Shown here: piece after piece, positions 13,028-18,762 of the stretch
Layout: each line of letters starts with the position of its first letter
Position numbering within the stretch: position 1 is the stretch's first letter
Source: Orbicella franksi
Taxonomy: Eukaryota
NCBI GenBank assembly: GCA_964199315.1
Contig: OZ116705.1
Coordinates: 31,124,001-31,188,000, forward strand
Length of the DNA stretch: 64,000 bases
Reading direction: 5' to 3'
Translations under genes and position numbers: made by a program
The notes under the pieces: model-generated
What the model was told of the DNA's origin: nothing
The model's database searches: none
Seen by the model: the letters and a program-made list of their open reading frames with translations, nothing else

Positions 13028-13699
13028 ATGTACAGTTCTCTTGTAACTCTTTCGTTCGCCTTTGTCTTTGCAAATGCTTTGAGCACTGAAGAACATGTAA
13101 GACGCTTTTTCCGTCCCGAACATAGGGATCTTCTCCCCGAAGTTACCAGCTTACAGCTGCAAGACGAGCCAGCCTTGAAGGTGCCACAGAACGACGACTC
13201 CACCAAGTGCTTAGCGCACTGTGAGCCAGAGTGTAAAAACGTCGAGGTGCCACCGCATTTGACGGTAAATATCCACATTCGATATTGTTTTACTTCTGGT
13301 CTTAAATTCGTTATTGAGTTCCATACGATGTAATCGCGCGTCGCCACACCTTATGAACCATTACGTGCAAATCCGCCAGGCTATTACCTCCTAAACTAAT
13401 CTCTCTTTTTCCTTTCTTGTCAGGATCCTGCAAACTTCCAAAAATTTGAAGACAAACCGATCAACTGCGTGCTAGCTTCAACAGTCGTGTTCAAGAGGAA
13501 ACCAAAATACCAGTGCCAGTACTTGGGCCTGTACCTGTTCGACTGCTGCCGCGCCTGCAACGCCGAACACGCTAAATGCCTGAACTTACTCGGAAGTTTC
13601 TACGGAGGCCCAGAATTCTGTTACAGGGACAACTACAAGTGCATGTGCAAGTGTCTCGATAAACACAACCCACCAGAGAATTATTATCAAATCGAGTAA
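13028..13699 (+). CDS. Secreted Cys-rich protein, unassigned family, member A (170 aa, 2 exons)
   Basis: Exon 1 is 13028-13264 (MYSSLVTLSFAFVFANALS...KCLAHCEPEC...PPHLT|gtaaat). Exon 2 is 13424-13699 (tttcttgtcag|DPANF...EDKPINC...YQC...FDCCRACNAEHAKC...EFCYRDNYKCMCKCLDK...*). The intron is phase 0 and TATAAAAG lies at 12921. Confidence 0.88.
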
Positions 13700-15392
13700 A
13701 AAACAGTAAATGACTGCTCTAACACGCGGGTACAGCGAGCTCTGTAAGCGGACCAAAATACTAGTGTAGAGTGAAACGCTATATCATTTCTCTACCGAGA
13801 CAGTTTTTTGATATTGTTGTAAGTTTAGTTTAGTTTTTGTATGCCTAGTTGAATCTCCGAAAGCTTTCCGAAGTTTGTATGAAAGTTTGTAACTAATGAA
13901 CGAAATAAATGTATTAATTGAAAAAAAATATATTGTGATTAATTTTGGTGTCAACAAACAAAAAGGCGACCCACTCCTAAAAGCTTTATGCACCTCCCAT
14001 TTTATCTCCCCAGCGAGAGGAAAAAATACTCTTGATAAAATTTCAATGTCTCAGAGAAAGAATTTAGAAAACCGCGTTCGTTTTTGTTCAGACTCTTCAA
14101 TTTCTTCTTTCTTCTTATGACTGCTCAATCTCTTACTAGTTATGCTAACGAATTCATAGTCTCTGCGCACTTCACTCAGATCCTAAGTCTCCAGGCCAAA
14201 AAATTCACTGCAAAGCGTCTTTCACGCTTTGAAAATAAAGTAAACAGTGTCTAAGTGAAACTGGAAAAAGAAATGACTACAAAATAGAATAAGGAAGCCA
14301 CCAAAACGAGTTAAAAGAGTTTTAATAAAGAGTAATTACTTTGTTTCCTTTATTCCTACTAAAACAATACAGCTTACATGATTGAATTTTACTGAATAAT
14401 AAAATACATCAGATCACATAGCGTATTGTTGTTAACAGCCGTGTTTTTGTTAATGGTGGATAATGGCTAAACAAACTTGTACTGGCGGCATTTTGGGCCA
14501 ATACAGAACCTTACGAGGCAAAATTTAGCCTTATTAGTCCTTATCTGACCGTTAATTTTTCCGCTTTGGTATGAAGTGGATAGATTTCAATTACCTTGCC
14601 GAAGGTGCTTGCTAAACAATGTGATACTTTGCTATCGAAAGCCTGTTCTTGAATTCATTCAATGACTTTAATTATACCAGGAATAACTCCAACAAAACAA
14701 CCAGTGAAGCAAAAGAATAAAAATAAAGTCATTAACTAGAATACTCAAGATCAGGCATGCAAGCAGCTCAAAGCCCAGATGATGCTAACAAAAAAATACT
14801 GATAATTTAATTAAGTAAAAAAGAAATTTGCTCAATATTGAATGTAGTGCGGTTTGTCAAGTGTACGCGCAAGGAGCGTGGTAGGTGAATAACATGTCAG
14901 GTATTAAGGGGGCTCATAACGACATAATAAAGGATTAAATGTTTTTTGTTAACTGGCCAACTGATTGCGGAAAAATTAACGGTTTTGTAACTTTAGTGAA
15001 TGAAACCATTGAATATAACATCGTAAATACTGGCCTACACGTTCACGCAAAAAAGGGCACTCTTGCAAAAACAGGAAAAAATTCCGATGGACAATAAAAT
15101 GTCTTATCTTCAAAACATTGAATTTTAGCTATCTTTCCTACAAATTTACTGCTAAAATCTTTCACGATCGCACCAACACGCCCTGTTCTTTTTTACTGTT
15201 ACTATAAAAGAAAGCGATTTGCCACCAGACAAATCCAACGTGCTTTAAATGAACCCGTGCGTGTACGTGCCAGACAAGACAAACTTGCCAACTGACGTTA
15301 CACGTGCATGATTCAGCCAATTAGAATTCTCAAGGCAACGAATCAAAAACAAACTGCAAACAATCCAAGCGTTTGATTTTCCGCTTTCGTGG

Positions 15393-15400
15393 TATAAAAG
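15393..15400 (+). promoter_or_regulatory. TATA box of Cys-rich gene B
   Basis: TATAAAAG about 82 nt upstream of the ATG at 15482, with CACGTG at 15301. Confidence 0.55.
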
Positions 15401-15481: not shown

Positions 15482-16217
15482 ATGAAATCGTACTTGTTGG
15501 TCTGCTTAGTGGCTGCTGCCATCATGGCCACACAAGGATACAGGCACAGTCATATGCAGGGGTCGCATCAGTTCCAAGATGAAGCCCTTAGTGCGTTAGA
15601 TAACATGGAAGATCCAGCGTCCGGTGCTCCACCACAACCACCACAGCCACCACAGCCACCACCAAACCCTCACGAGTGTGACTGTGATGGAGTTTGTCTT
15701 GACCTTCATGAAGATCGTCTCCCAAAGGAAATCCAGGTCAGTACAACACAAGCCGAAATAACCGCATTGAAAACCAAACAGTTTGAAGTACGAGGATCCA
15801 AGCTTGAAAACGATATCAATTTATTAAGTGCATTTATTAAGTTTAGCATTCAGAAAGCGATTTTCGAGGACATAACGCTTAAATTGATATTCTTATGTCT
15901 GTTTTTTTTAGGACAAGCACAATTATCTGAGCTACGAGAATTTCCCAGTATTGTGTCGTGATGCAGCCTCCATCTATCTGCCGCCAGAAGAACAAGACAA
16001 ACCCCAGAAAAAATACGTCTGCAAGCAGACCTTCGACTGCTGCCGTTATTGTAATGCGCTGTTTTACAGATGCGTGGATAAGAAGTCTAACACCTATGGA
16101 TTCTGCATGCGCGGAGCATACAAATGTATGTGTCAGTGCATTGATAAGAGATCATACCAGGAACTGCCTTACCCTACGCCCCCACCAACCCCCCCAGCCC
16201 CCCCAGCCATCCCCTAA
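15482..16217 (+). CDS. Secreted Cys-rich, Pro-rich protein, unassigned family, member B (186 aa, 2 exons)
   Basis: Exon 1 is 15482-15736 (MKSYLLVCLVAAAIMATQG...PPQPPQPPQPPP..ECDCDGVC...KEIQ|gtcagt). Exon 2 is 15912-16217 (ttttttag|DKHNYLSYENFPVLC...YVC..TFDCCRYCNALFYRC...GFCMRGAYKCMCQCIDK...PTPPPTPPAPPAIP*). The intron is phase 0 and TATAAAAG lies at 15393. Confidence 0.9.
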
Positions 16218-17996
16218 AGTGACTAATGTCGCCATGAGTATTGTTATACTAGCTTTGCAGAGCTGTTTGCAGACCTGAATTCTAAGCCTGTAGGAGATTG
16301 ATTCATTTTGTTTTGCTGTAGTCGACAGCCATAGTGATGTAAACAGGTTCAAAGTCATGTAAACTACTAATAAACATCCTTAAAATGAAGTATTTGATGT
16401 TGTTCTTTGTTGATCTATAGATTCTCCCCAGCCTTCCATCATTTTTTTCTCTCCGCCTTTATTTTTTGCGATAATAACCCACACTTCTGTCATTTCCAAT
16501 TCGAAATTTTCTTTTATGTTCTCAATGCGAAAATTAAGTTACACAGCGAAGAGTACTTTTGAAAGATTTTGATCTGTTCTGTGGTAAAAGCTTAAACTTC
16601 CATCTTGACATTATCACAAAAAAGTAATAATACTCTTGGTTGCAGATTAAGGTTTGTTGTTTGTTATAGACACAGCTTAATGAACAAAATCAGAGGAAAA
16701 TACTGCACAGTAGCTTTCATCTGATAGGTCTTGTCCTTGACTAGAAGTTCAAACCAAATTAATTGACCCGTATGCGGTTGAATGGAGTTAAACTCGACAA
16801 CATTCTTCTGTCCTAAAGTTTTACCGATAACAAGTTGCTATGCACTAAATTCGCTGAACCGGAACAGCGCTTTACCAAATACAAAGTGCTTTAATTTGTA
16901 CGCTGTCGTGCATAGTGATTAGACACTGAGGCGAGGTCATTCCAATTCATTCTTAAGGGGATCAAGGGATATTTTCCTGGTTTACTAACAAATTGTCATT
17001 ACACTAAATAAAAAAAAAATGTGTGGCAAATCAAGAGGAGTGTGAGTTTTGAACTTAGGAATAGACTCCGCATAACTACTTAAGCATGACCTGGTCATGG
17101 TTATTAAGCACCAATTCAACTCTCACGAATTAAGAACAGCGGGTCCATGTTGCTAGCTCAAGGCTTTGTTTCACAACCCAATATTAACCTAATATCTGCT
17201 ACGAATTGAACTCAGTTTGCCTACTAGTTCCTTCAATAATAATATTCTTTTTCTGTTAGAAATAACTCTTCCGTATACCTGGTATACCATGTCCTTTCCC
17301 GGTAAATAGTTCTTGAAGTTTTTGATACAAACAGAATGCAATAGCTTGGTTGTCCTATTTCAGTTTTGCCGCGCCCAACAACCTTATTTACGTCCTTTCG
17401 ATGGATTATAAAATGACCTTTGTACTGAGAGATACACTTGTTTTATACTCACATGATTGAACAGGCTTACCACGATTCATTAAGTTCAAAAGTCTCCCCA
17501 CATGGAAGGAAACACAACAATCGGTAGTGTTTTGAATATCACAAGATCTCACATATGTCGAGAAATGACCACAATATTTGACAAATCGATTTTCCATGTT
17601 GATGTTATCAGAGGGACGATTTGCATTCAGATTTATACTAATGTTTAATACAGTGTACGCTTAAATTCAAGACGGTAGCAACAAAATTGAGATTTAATAT
17701 TCACAATATCAGCTTTTATCTACGATGAATGTTTCTCTCTTGTTGGTGAAAATAATATAGCACGGTAATACACACGCTTATAATTTTACAAGGTGTTATT
17801 TATTTAATTTTTTTTTTCTGCTTACCTGTATCGCCTTGCAATACCGTACACGTGAAATTAAATAAATTTTAAAAGATCAAAGCTTTGCGGGATCAGTCAA
17901 GTTTCTTGATAATCATTAACACCGATTTCTACATTTCAAGGTCATGAATTATTTCTGAACTGACTTTCGCTCCATAAAGCGTTTATTACCGTTAGC

Positions 17997-18762
17997 TCAC
18001 CATCCGTGAACCACTATTTGGGGTAAACTATCTTTAACGCAGTCGCCAGCACACCTGTAAGCTAAGTCCAAGCACTGCACTACGCTTCTAGTAAGAACAC
18101 AGCTGTAATATTCCACGTTGCATCTTCGACAACAAAAGAAGAAACAGCCGGCTAAGTAAGGTTCATTCTCGATGTCGATTGTTCCACTTTCTTTGCAGAA
18201 AACTGGTTTGTTCTCAATCCACATTAGTTGCTGAAATAGAGTGTTAACAAAAGACCGTTAAATCAATTTGCTCAAAACTTCGCAAACATTCTAACAAACA
18301 AAAGTCTATCGGAAAGCGATATGAATTTGGTTTTATCGAATCGTGAGCTTTTGGAAATCTAACACAAAGCAGGTAACAGCAAAGATATTGTTACTATTTA
18401 AAATCGACTCCAGGATTTGCTGTTTTCTTGGTAGTAGAAATTCTACTGCAAGAAGGTCACCGTGAATCGAAATTTGCATCTCTACTCACCTCAAGTTCGG
18501 AGCTCTCAGGACCTAGACAAAAATTGCTACAGTCGCATGTTAAGTCTTCTTGCAAACGTTTTTTTGGTTTCACTGATTCAAGTGAAATCTCTCGACTCTC
18601 TTTGCGTTCTAGTTTCAAGTTTTCCACATTAATATTTTCATCGTACCAGGCTTTTGTAATTTCTGGAAGGACCAGTTTGCGTGAACTTCTGCTCACAACT
18701 CGCTGTAGTTGAACGAGAAATACCAGAGATGAAAACACCCGAACAGCTAACAAATTCCTCAT
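17997..18762 (-). CDS. Secreted Cys-rich protein, unassigned family, member C (168 aa, 2 exons)
   Basis: Exon 1 is 18762-18490 (MRNLLAVRVFSSLVFLVQLQRVVS...KKRLQEDLTCDCSNFC..SSELE|gtgagt). Exon 2 is 18230-17997 (tatttcag|QLMWIENKPVFC...AGCFFFCCRRCNVEYYSC..VQCLDLAYRCAGDCVKD...*). The phase-0 intron is in the same position as in members A and B. Confidence 0.87.

Follow-up and report, generated by a model that had tools for sequence, protein, structure and literature searches.

A trio of clustered two-exon genes from the coral Orbicella franksi points to an uncharacterized family of cysteine-rich, predicted secreted anthozoan proteins

We analyzed a stretch of 64,000 nucleotides from the stony coral Orbicella franksi (NCBI GenBank assembly GCA_964199315.1, contig OZ116705.1, positions 31,124,001 to 31,188,000 of the forward strand), which is referred to as the window throughout. 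Between positions 13028 and 18762 of this window, three intact two-exon genes could be rebuilt from the sequence. They are named A, B, and C here, and they encode cysteine-rich proteins with signal-like N-termini. Judging jointly from identity, architecture, and evolution, we are confident that the trio belongs to a family restricted to anthozoans, mainly stony corals, without a characterized member, and that this family represents an old and stable trio of ancient paralogues, supplemented by extra copies in some lineages. The family is new but belongs to a known general kind, the taxonomically restricted Cys-rich secreted proteins, with a predicted disulfide-stapled helical hairpin. As to function, our best guess is an extracellular ligand or binding role, to which we assign a probability of about 0.35-0.4. 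The trio had first been noticed in a preliminary description of this DNA, made without database searches, and several of its claims are taken up below.

All three proteins share one cysteine framework, which is spread over both exons. The first exon carries a three-Cys motif (Cx3Cx3C in A, CxCx3C in B and C). The second exon encodes E-x2-P-[IV]-x-C, one Cys at a variable position, the block CC-R-x-C-N-x5-C, a loop of 13, 10, and 8 residues in A, B, and C, respectively, and the final block C-x-[C/G]-x-C-[LIV], the middle Cys of which is replaced by Gly in C. Without the Cys in the signal peptide of B, this amounts to 13 Cys each in A and B and 12 in C. The motifs listed in the preliminary description are all present, except that the lead-in spacing of the final block, given there as C-x5-[YK/YR]-C, is C-x4-Y-[KR]-C in all three proteins. 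A family signature can be written as P-x2-C ... F-x-CC-R-x-C-N-x5-C ... C-x4-Y-x-C-x3-C together with the three-Cys motif on a separate exon and a phase-0 intron, and it is found in 3/3 genes. Its columns are invariant or nearly so in alignments of 22-41 relatives, with F, CC, R, C, N, C, C, Y, C, and C as the invariant core. Hence conservation extends beyond the cysteines to the core F, R, N, and Y. Within the window, tblastn comparisons returned expectation (E) values of 1e-15/6e-16 between A and B, 6e-8 between B and C, and 2e-5 between A and C. At the level of these sequences, the similarity is far beyond chance, and the proposed tandem cluster of three genes with signal-like N-termini stands. 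No fourth copy was found when the 64 kb were searched by tblastn with each of the three proteins.

The introns of A, B, and C are of the GT...AG type, lie in phase 0, and occupy an equivalent position. The distance from the intron to E-x2-P-[IV]-x-C is eight codons in A and B and five codons in C. Full-length A aligns with an Oculina protein (P0045) at 67% over 173 amino acids (E 6e-85), full-length B with a Pocillopora protein (P0044) at E 8e-65, and full-length C with the spliced, transcript-derived proteins P0073-P0077 at E ~1e-41. Since these alignments with proteins of other corals run from end to end, the exon joins are real. The junction of B, moreover, matches protein models of Pocillopora, Oculina, and Porites. 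For C, an intron-retaining relative is available: the genomic protein P0052 carries a 50-codon in-frame insert exactly at the predicted junction; its first residue is Val (GTx) and its last is Gln, which could be encoded by CAG. The insert is lacking in P0073, P0075, and P0161, all of which derive from uninterrupted open reading frames (ORFs) on assembled contigs. The comparison therefore confirms the position of the C junction. Spliced family transcripts are present in coral RNA-derived assemblies, as seen for P0073 (16 contigs), P0113, P0161, P0050, and P0060. Thus, the two-exon architecture with its shared phase-0 intron, as described initially, was borne out by orthologues, and spliced C-type transcripts exist. 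The first exons are conserved as well. In an alignment of A exon 1 with its Oculina and Porites orthologues, 36 columns are invariant, including all three Cys, and the three Cys of C exon 1 are invariant in the alignment with the spliced C-type transcript proteins. All three proteins begin with a hydrophobic segment, and plausible cleavage sites according to the -3/-1 rule are present.

Word-indexed searches with the exon-2 products of A, B, and C returned 21, 18, and 2 matches, respectively. For B exon 2, the homologues range from E 2e-38 downward in strength, and those of C exon 2 include P0040 (E 9e-41) and P0041. A profile built from 22 sequences and run against 1.84 billion representatives gave 50 matches at E<=1e-3. 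The named relatives come from Orbicella faveolata, Oculina patagonica, Pocillopora verrucosa, P. meandrina, and P. damicornis, and from the further stony corals Porites evermanni, P. lobata, P. harrisoni, Montipora foliosa, and Desmophyllum pertusum; Porites is represented by four species among the named members. The sole named match outside the stony corals is a weak one (E 2.6e-4) to a cluster with a protein from the octocoral Xenia. Cluster look-ups of 20 more nameless relatives added no species. None of the matches could be attributed to a sea anemone, a medusozoan, or a bilaterian; the representatives being nameless, this is absence of evidence only. The profile search for taxonomic range suggested in the preliminary description thus yielded stony corals plus the weak Xenia match. 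Two octocoral relatives, P0081 (Xenia sp., XP_046851420.1) and P0067, lack the three-Cys motif of exon 1 as well as the core R and N. Both have a C-terminal extension; in P0081 it comprises two short Gly-X-Y collagen-like runs and a three-Cys tail ending in CIKLL, and in P0067 a similar Cys tail.

No known family accounts for these proteins. Searches of Pfam at E<=10 with the six exon products, seven full-length relatives, and each of the 41 members of an alignment did not return any relevant family, and in particular none of ShKT, Kunitz, defensin, insulin, cystine-knot/DAN, WAP, CHH, or the other Pfam Cys-rich domains. Scattered matches to Pneumo_att_G, VIR_N, and Piezo at permissive thresholds were rejected as chance. 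A, B, and C contain neither the insulin A-chain nor the Ly6 CCx4CN pattern, and they also lack the full minicollagen motif CX3CX3CX3CX3CC, of which A exon 1 has the Cx3Cx3C fragment only. A regular-expression search of the three proteins for the published SCRiP motif, Cx6-7Cx4-6CPx3-6Cx4-6Cx5-6CCC (PMC2652719), gave no match, in agreement with the initial statement that the trio does not belong to the SCRiPs. Among PDB sequences, a profile search at E<=10 yielded only TA0938 (E 0.035) and the copper-storage protein Csp3 (E 0.15), both weak and unrelated. A Csp3-like metal-binding reading was dropped, because the match lacks significance and disulfides agree better with the number of Cys and with the secretion signal. 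Foldseek comparisons of the full-length B-type model and of the A domain from the window with 350,542 PDB chains gave nothing at E<1 (best E 1.1 and 2.1), and the weak matches are generic helical hairpins from RNA polymerase, a clamp loader, PsaQ, the disulfide-linked bc1 hinge protein, and RAMP1. Acrorhagin I (6UX5) and B-IV were returned neither by the PDB-sequence profile search (E<=10) nor by either Foldseek search. That the trio cannot be assigned to a known family, as initially proposed, is therefore upheld by the Pfam, PDB-sequence, and Foldseek results. All relatives are labelled "uncharacterized," "hypothetical," or "unnamed," and among 8.4 million papers there was no match for twelve accessions or locus names of the family or for six of its sequence motifs, which agrees with the suggestion that the family is undescribed.

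A neighbor-joining tree of the domains, rooted on Xenia, resolved orthogroups A, B, and C with bootstrap values of 80%, 62%, and 99%, respectively, and grouped B with C at 97%. Each orthogroup spans robust (Orbicella, Oculina, Pocillopora, Desmophyllum) and complex (Porites, Montipora) corals. The split between these two groups is the deepest within the living Scleractinia, and the presence of each orthogroup on both sides therefore places the triplication before it. The order A-B-C is kept within ~8 kb in Porites evermanni, and the A-B pair is kept in Desmophyllum. The C-type exon 2 of Porites evermanni (L001, 14525-14761, plus strand) lies on the strand of A and B, and that of the window on the opposite strand, so that an inversion must have occurred in one lineage. 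In comparisons of exon 2 between the window and Porites, the proportions of nonsynonymous differences (pN) are 0.16, 0.21, and 0.31 for A, B, and C, and those of synonymous differences (pS) are 0.88, 0.75, and 0.70. Only pN and pS are given here, because the ratio of nonsynonymous to synonymous substitution rates (dN/dS, Nei-Gojobori) was incomputable for most pairs owing to saturation of the synonymous sites. All three genes are under purifying selection, with synonymous sites saturated. Hence the view of a tandemly expanded, fast-diverging family did not hold: there are three old orthogroups, with A-B-C synteny in Porites and pN of 0.16-0.31 against saturated pS. Likewise, the region behind the signal peptide had been described as variable and pro-like, and for A this is incorrect; in Orbicella, Oculina, and Porites alike, the signal peptide of A is closely followed by the invariant sequence EHV[KR]RFFRPEHR. 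Each paralogue also has a conserved tail of its own, PPENYY in A, ELPY in B, and ITIKGW in C.

Some irregularities were seen at the loci of other corals. The region upstream of the Porites C-type exon 2 is an assembly gap. In Desmophyllum pertusum (L002, ~8766-11114), the A exon-2 product and B are joined in a single deposited protein model, P0019, and the B copy seems to be damaged: a stretch that spans the CC-R-x-C-N block is out of frame, which could reflect an assembly error or a pseudogene. Weak tblastx matches in the window at 23578-23637 and 31094-31204 correspond to the Mpv17/PMP22-family and adenosine-deaminase genes that flank A-B in Desmophyllum, which suggests a wider microsynteny. 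Lineage-specific extra copies comprise two B genes in Pocillopora (in P. verrucosa P0044 and P0013, both on one 28.8-Mb chromosome), at least two A genes in Porites (in P. evermanni P0142 versus the A copy in L001), and a second Orbicella locus that is described below.

The product of the second exon is predicted to form a mainly helical domain. AlphaFold2 models of the Pocillopora B protein, based on an alignment of 37 rows, reached an overall predicted local distance difference test score (pLDDT) of 58, with 78-90 in the Cys-rich domain. For the exon-2 product of A from the window (41 rows), the pLDDT was 81 and the predicted template modeling score (pTM) 0.71. The A-domain model consists of a beta-hairpin (residues 20-22 and 31-34) and two long antiparallel helices (36-56 and 62-81), the latter with pLDDT >90, and the Pocillopora B model has the equivalent secondary-structure elements. 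The predicted fold, which has no solved relative, would thus be a domain of ~70 residues in which a short beta-hairpin is followed by two long antiparallel helices. In A, B, and C alike, the cysteines of the helices are arranged in a palindromic fashion, C-x3-C-x6-C on helix 1 and C-x6-C-x3-C on helix 2. Such a spacing in an antiparallel hairpin would therefore give three inter-helix disulfide staples, which in A exon 2 we infer to be 52-66, 45-73, and 41-77, with a five-residue turn and i+j = 118 throughout. The second Cys of the CC pair probably bonds with the invariant Cys of the P-x2-C strand in this model, and the variable-position Cys together with the three exon-1 Cys would be left for two further bonds. 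The thirteenth Cys, present in A and B as the middle Cys of C-M-C-x-C, is missing from C and from the octocoral relatives. It lies two residues from each staple Cys and so would face away from the helix interface; in the model, it stands out as a candidate for a free thiol or for a bond between molecules and could link a covalent dimer.

The coordinates of the three genes and of their local features are collected in Table 1.

Table 1. Genes A, B, and C and their local features (positions in the window)
Feature	Position	Strand	Remarks
Gene A	exon 1 13028-13264, exon 2 13424-13699	+	170 amino acids, 13 Cys
TATAAAA box of A	12921..12927	+	107 bp upstream of ATG; pattern scan
A exon 1	13028..13264	+	79 codons: signal-like N-terminus, EHV[KR]RFFRPEHR, Cx3Cx3C; translation
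A intron	13265..13423	+	GT..AG, phase 0, 159 bp; junction backed by orthologue P0045
A exon 2	13424..13699	+	91 codons + stop; Cys-rich domain, 10 Cys
A exon 2, predicted elements	beta-hairpin residues 20-34; helices 36-56, 62-81 (= 13529-13666)	+	AlphaFold2
AATAAA polyadenylation signal of A	13904..13909	+	pattern scan
Gene B	exon 1 15482-15736, exon 2 15912-16217	+	186 amino acids, 14 Cys including 1 in signal peptide
TATAAAA box of B	15393..15399	+	89 bp upstream of ATG; pattern scan
B exon 1	15482..15736	+	85 codons: signal-like N-terminus, Pro/Gln-rich stretch, CxCx3C; translation
9-bp repeat CCACCACAG in B exon 1	15629-15662	+	3.8 copies, encodes PPQ repeats; TRF
B intron	15737..15911	+	GT..AG, phase 0, 175 bp
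B exon 2	15912..16217	+	101 codons + stop; 10-Cys domain, then ELPY + Pro-rich tail
AATAAA polyadenylation signal of B	16369..16374	+	pattern scan
Gene C	exon 1 18762-18490, exon 2 18230-17997	-	168 amino acids, 12 Cys
C exon 1	18490..18762	-	91 codons: hydrophobic N-terminus, charged region, CxCx3C; translation
C intron	18231..18489	-	GT..AG, phase 0, 259 bp
C exon 2	17997..18230	-	77 codons + stop; 9-Cys domain, tail ends GW
AATAAA signal of C	17982..17987	-	directly past stop, ATTAAA signals farther downstream; pattern scan

No TATA box was found by the pattern scan upstream of the C start codon (18763-18900, minus strand). A GTGAGT...TAG pair in this same region could be an intron of the 5' untranslated region, and C may have a 5' non-coding exon. 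Elsewhere in the window, an ORF at 6557-6943 (minus strand) has a sub-threshold Pfam match to DUF4773 (E 5.6e-5, 24.1 bits versus a cut-off of 27) and is probably an exon of an unrelated neighboring gene.

The close relative O. faveolata provides a direct counterpart of the cluster. Positions 13159-23670 of the window are 98.3% identical to contig MZGG01001815.1 of O. faveolata assembly GCA_002042975.1, with too few differences between the two sequences to inform on constraint. Gene B has the identical start codon, stop codon, and two-exon structure in the NCBI record of this species, and its exon-2 product is 100% identical at the protein level. The O. faveolata protein has 192 amino acids, which is caused by two extra copies of the 9-bp PPQ repeat (18 extra bases); the repeat is an in-frame length polymorphism. 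Gene A is annotated as XP_020623323.1, which is 99% identical to the A exon-2 product over the shared part and has a different, odd first exon that is probably an artifact. A gap of 100 N lies at L009 10174-10273 (MZGG01001815.1), inside the A exon-1 region and exactly where the alignment with the window stops; upstream of it, the window and O. faveolata sequences are not alignable. Gene C is intact (L009 15131-15893) and has no gene call in the annotation of GCA_002042975.1. It looks like a gene missed by this annotation.

The second Orbicella locus of the family is found on O. faveolata contig MZGG01001503.1 (L010), at ~16069-16332 (minus strand) and 19044-19262 (plus strand). Here, an A-like domain exon on the minus strand lies inside the multi-exon gene LOC110055429 (369 amino acids), the product of which has a C-like domain. 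The locus contains 11 kb of N. Two transcript-derived proteins, the A-like P0050 and the C-like P0060, are similar in their first 60 residues.

Stable orthologues, ordinary rates, and conserved surfaces suit a protein whose endogenous partner is itself conserved, which led us to rank an extracellular ligand or binding role first. After secretion, the rigid hairpin would serve as a stable extracellular binding module, the partner of which would be endogenous to the coral, either a receptor or a component of the matrix. Segments that are conserved among orthologues and specific to each paralogue would confer the specificity, namely the N-terminal EHV[KR]RFFRPEHR and the PPENYY tail in A, YLSYENFPVLCRDA and the ELPY tail in B, and the ITIKGW end in C. 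An extended version of this proposal, that A, B, and C are ligands of an unrecognized anthozoan-specific extracellular signaling or recognition system with a new triple-stapled hairpin fold, and that A/B may form a disulfide-linked dimer, seems unlikely to us. Such a ligand system could serve calcification, symbiosis, or allorecognition specific to stony corals. Several points weigh against the ligand or binding role. The argument for it comes solely from the conservation pattern and the predicted fold. Secretion is predicted from hydrophobic N-termini and the -3/-1 rule, the exon-1 Cys motif was modeled at low confidence (pLDDT 38-48), and the proposed disulfide map was deduced from secondary structure and spacing. 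Moreover, cnidarian disulfide-stabilized helical hairpins are so far known as toxins (PMC13608440, PMC11896702), and a short acidic segment ending in RR/KR, a dibasic site, directly follows the signal peptide of A, as well as the A and B domains being basic (isoelectric point, pI, 8.1 and 8.5); both features are compatible with toxins.

These last observations speak for the second-ranked explanation, according to which A, B, and C would be disulfide-stabilized helical-hairpin toxins for venom or defence, made in cnidocytes or gland cells and acting on the ion channels or membranes of prey, predators, or competitors. SCRiPs have proprotein-convertase sites comparable to that of A (PMC2652719). 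In addition, a neurotoxin of Goniopora (Poritidae) is cited in a review (PMC13608440) as 88 amino acids with 10 Cys, and the exon-2 products have 91 (A) and 101 (B) amino acids with 10 Cys each; this is a lead only. We nevertheless regard the toxin explanation as doubtful. The orthogroups are essentially one-to-one and have been syntenic since the robust/complex split, many non-Cys residues are invariant, pN is well below the saturated pS, and there is no large lineage-specific expansion. Neither 6UX5 nor any other toxin was among the Foldseek matches at E<=10 or in the PDB-sequence profile search, the known hairpin toxins are only a third of the size of the trio proteins, and the C domain is acidic (pI 5.2). 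A dibasic site between the exon-1 Cys motif and the domain is lacking, so that a mature 10-Cys form would not obviously be made. A role as Cys-cross-linked structural components of the extracellular or skeletal organic matrix (calicoblastic matrix, mesoglea, or cnidocyst wall) ranks third and appears quite unlikely, although the family occurs mainly in calcifying stony corals, the odd Cys count of A and B could permit intermolecular disulfides, Pro-rich stretches flank the B domain on both sides, and the octocoral protein P0081 couples the domain to its collagen-like runs and Cys-rich tail. The Cx3Cx3C of A resembles part of the minicollagen Cys-rich spacing, but the complete minicollagen motif is absent, and Pfam Collagen was not matched by any of the proteins, P0081 included. 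The domains are not acidic in the way many skeletal matrix proteins are, and the low-complexity or repeat regions that are typical of matrix proteins are missing, except for the short PPQ run of B.

Fourth, and very unlikely in our view, the gene products could be secreted antimicrobials, either peptides or proteins, that influence the microbiome on the coral surface. They are small and disulfide-rich and are predicted to be secreted, the domains of A and B carry a mild positive charge, and helical-hairpin antimicrobial peptides exist in plants, the alpha-hairpinins. Against this, the net charge is low (+2 to +4, and -2 in C), the strong sequence conservation is atypical of host-defence peptides, and no known antimicrobial family was matched. 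Finally, spurious ORFs or decaying pseudogenes might have been suspected from the missing gene call of C in the O. faveolata record and from its lack of a TATA box in the scan. This explanation is effectively refuted by three intact reading frames with canonical splice sites, by orthologues under purifying selection across stony corals with spliced transcripts in other species, and by the intact C in both Orbicella sequences.

Few lineage-restricted secreted families are known from stony corals, with SCRiPs and galaxins as the usual examples, and such families are prime candidates for coral-specific traits. The trio described here has been kept as three syntenic copies since before the robust/complex split and is invisible to domain databases. 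Its definition provides a clean signature for the annotation of coral genomes and a target set for coral cell atlases and for venom, mucus, and skeleton proteomes. If the proteins were toxins, the helical-hairpin toxin motif would be extended to a much larger scaffold; if they were ligands, they would point to an unknown signaling axis. The family is not a categorical surprise and merits a short descriptive paper.

Four groups of known proteins invite comparison with the trio. The Goniopora toxin (GPT) comes from a stony coral of the Poritidae, a family of corals that also has the gene family studied here, and the trio's family could be that of this classical sodium-channel toxin, which never entered the databases. 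This is a lead only; according to the review (PMC13608440), the toxin sequence has no database entry. The toxin has 10 Cys, whereas the full A, B, and C proteins have 12-13 past the signal and show no evident site that would free a 10-Cys form. A similar principle is also found elsewhere: small Tim and CHCH proteins, the bc1 hinge subunit QCR6, and plant alpha-hairpinins carry CX3C motifs on two antiparallel helices with inter-helix disulfides, and the bc1 hinge subunits 8zno_H and 8bel_R were among the weak Foldseek matches (E 4-6, not significant). However, the twin CX3C/CX9C proteins are of the mitochondrial intermembrane space or of plants, have two disulfides and no such signal peptide, and share no sequence similarity with the trio. 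SCRiPs, first found in Orbicella/Montastraea faveolata, are like the trio in being taxonomically restricted, secreted, Cys-rich anthozoan proteins with possible convertase sites and an intron (PMC2652719). Their mature forms have 40-48 amino acids, eight Cys, and a beta-defensin-like or beta-rich structure, whereas the trio is predicted to be helical, with ~150 amino acids past the signal and 12-13 Cys. SCRiPs conserve little besides their cysteines (PMC2652719) and vary outside them, in contrast to the trio family.

The closest parallel in design is provided by the helical-hairpin toxins. Acrorhagin I from Actinia equina (PDB 6UX5) has four disulfides and resembles B-IV of nemerteans, and the octocoral nematocyst peptides U-GRTX-Esi20 and U-GRTX-Esi21 contain the same helical-hairpin motif (PMC13608440, PMC11896702). 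As in these peptides, the core of A, B, and C would be made of two antiparallel helices pinned by several disulfides. The hairpin toxins have 36-55 residues and three to four disulfides. The trio, by contrast, has a predicted core of ~70 residues to which a beta-hairpin is added, contains 12-13 Cys, carries a further Cys motif encoded by an exon of its own, and has long N-terminal regions. The octocoral hairpin-toxin genes are intronless, whereas A, B, and C each have an intron, and the conservation of the trio is much stronger than expected of hairpin-toxin families. Because of the lack of a sequence or structure match, the larger core, the beta-hairpin, the exon-1 Cys motif, and the intron, the trio is not a member of those families, but it would share with them the principle of the disulfide-pinned helical hairpin.

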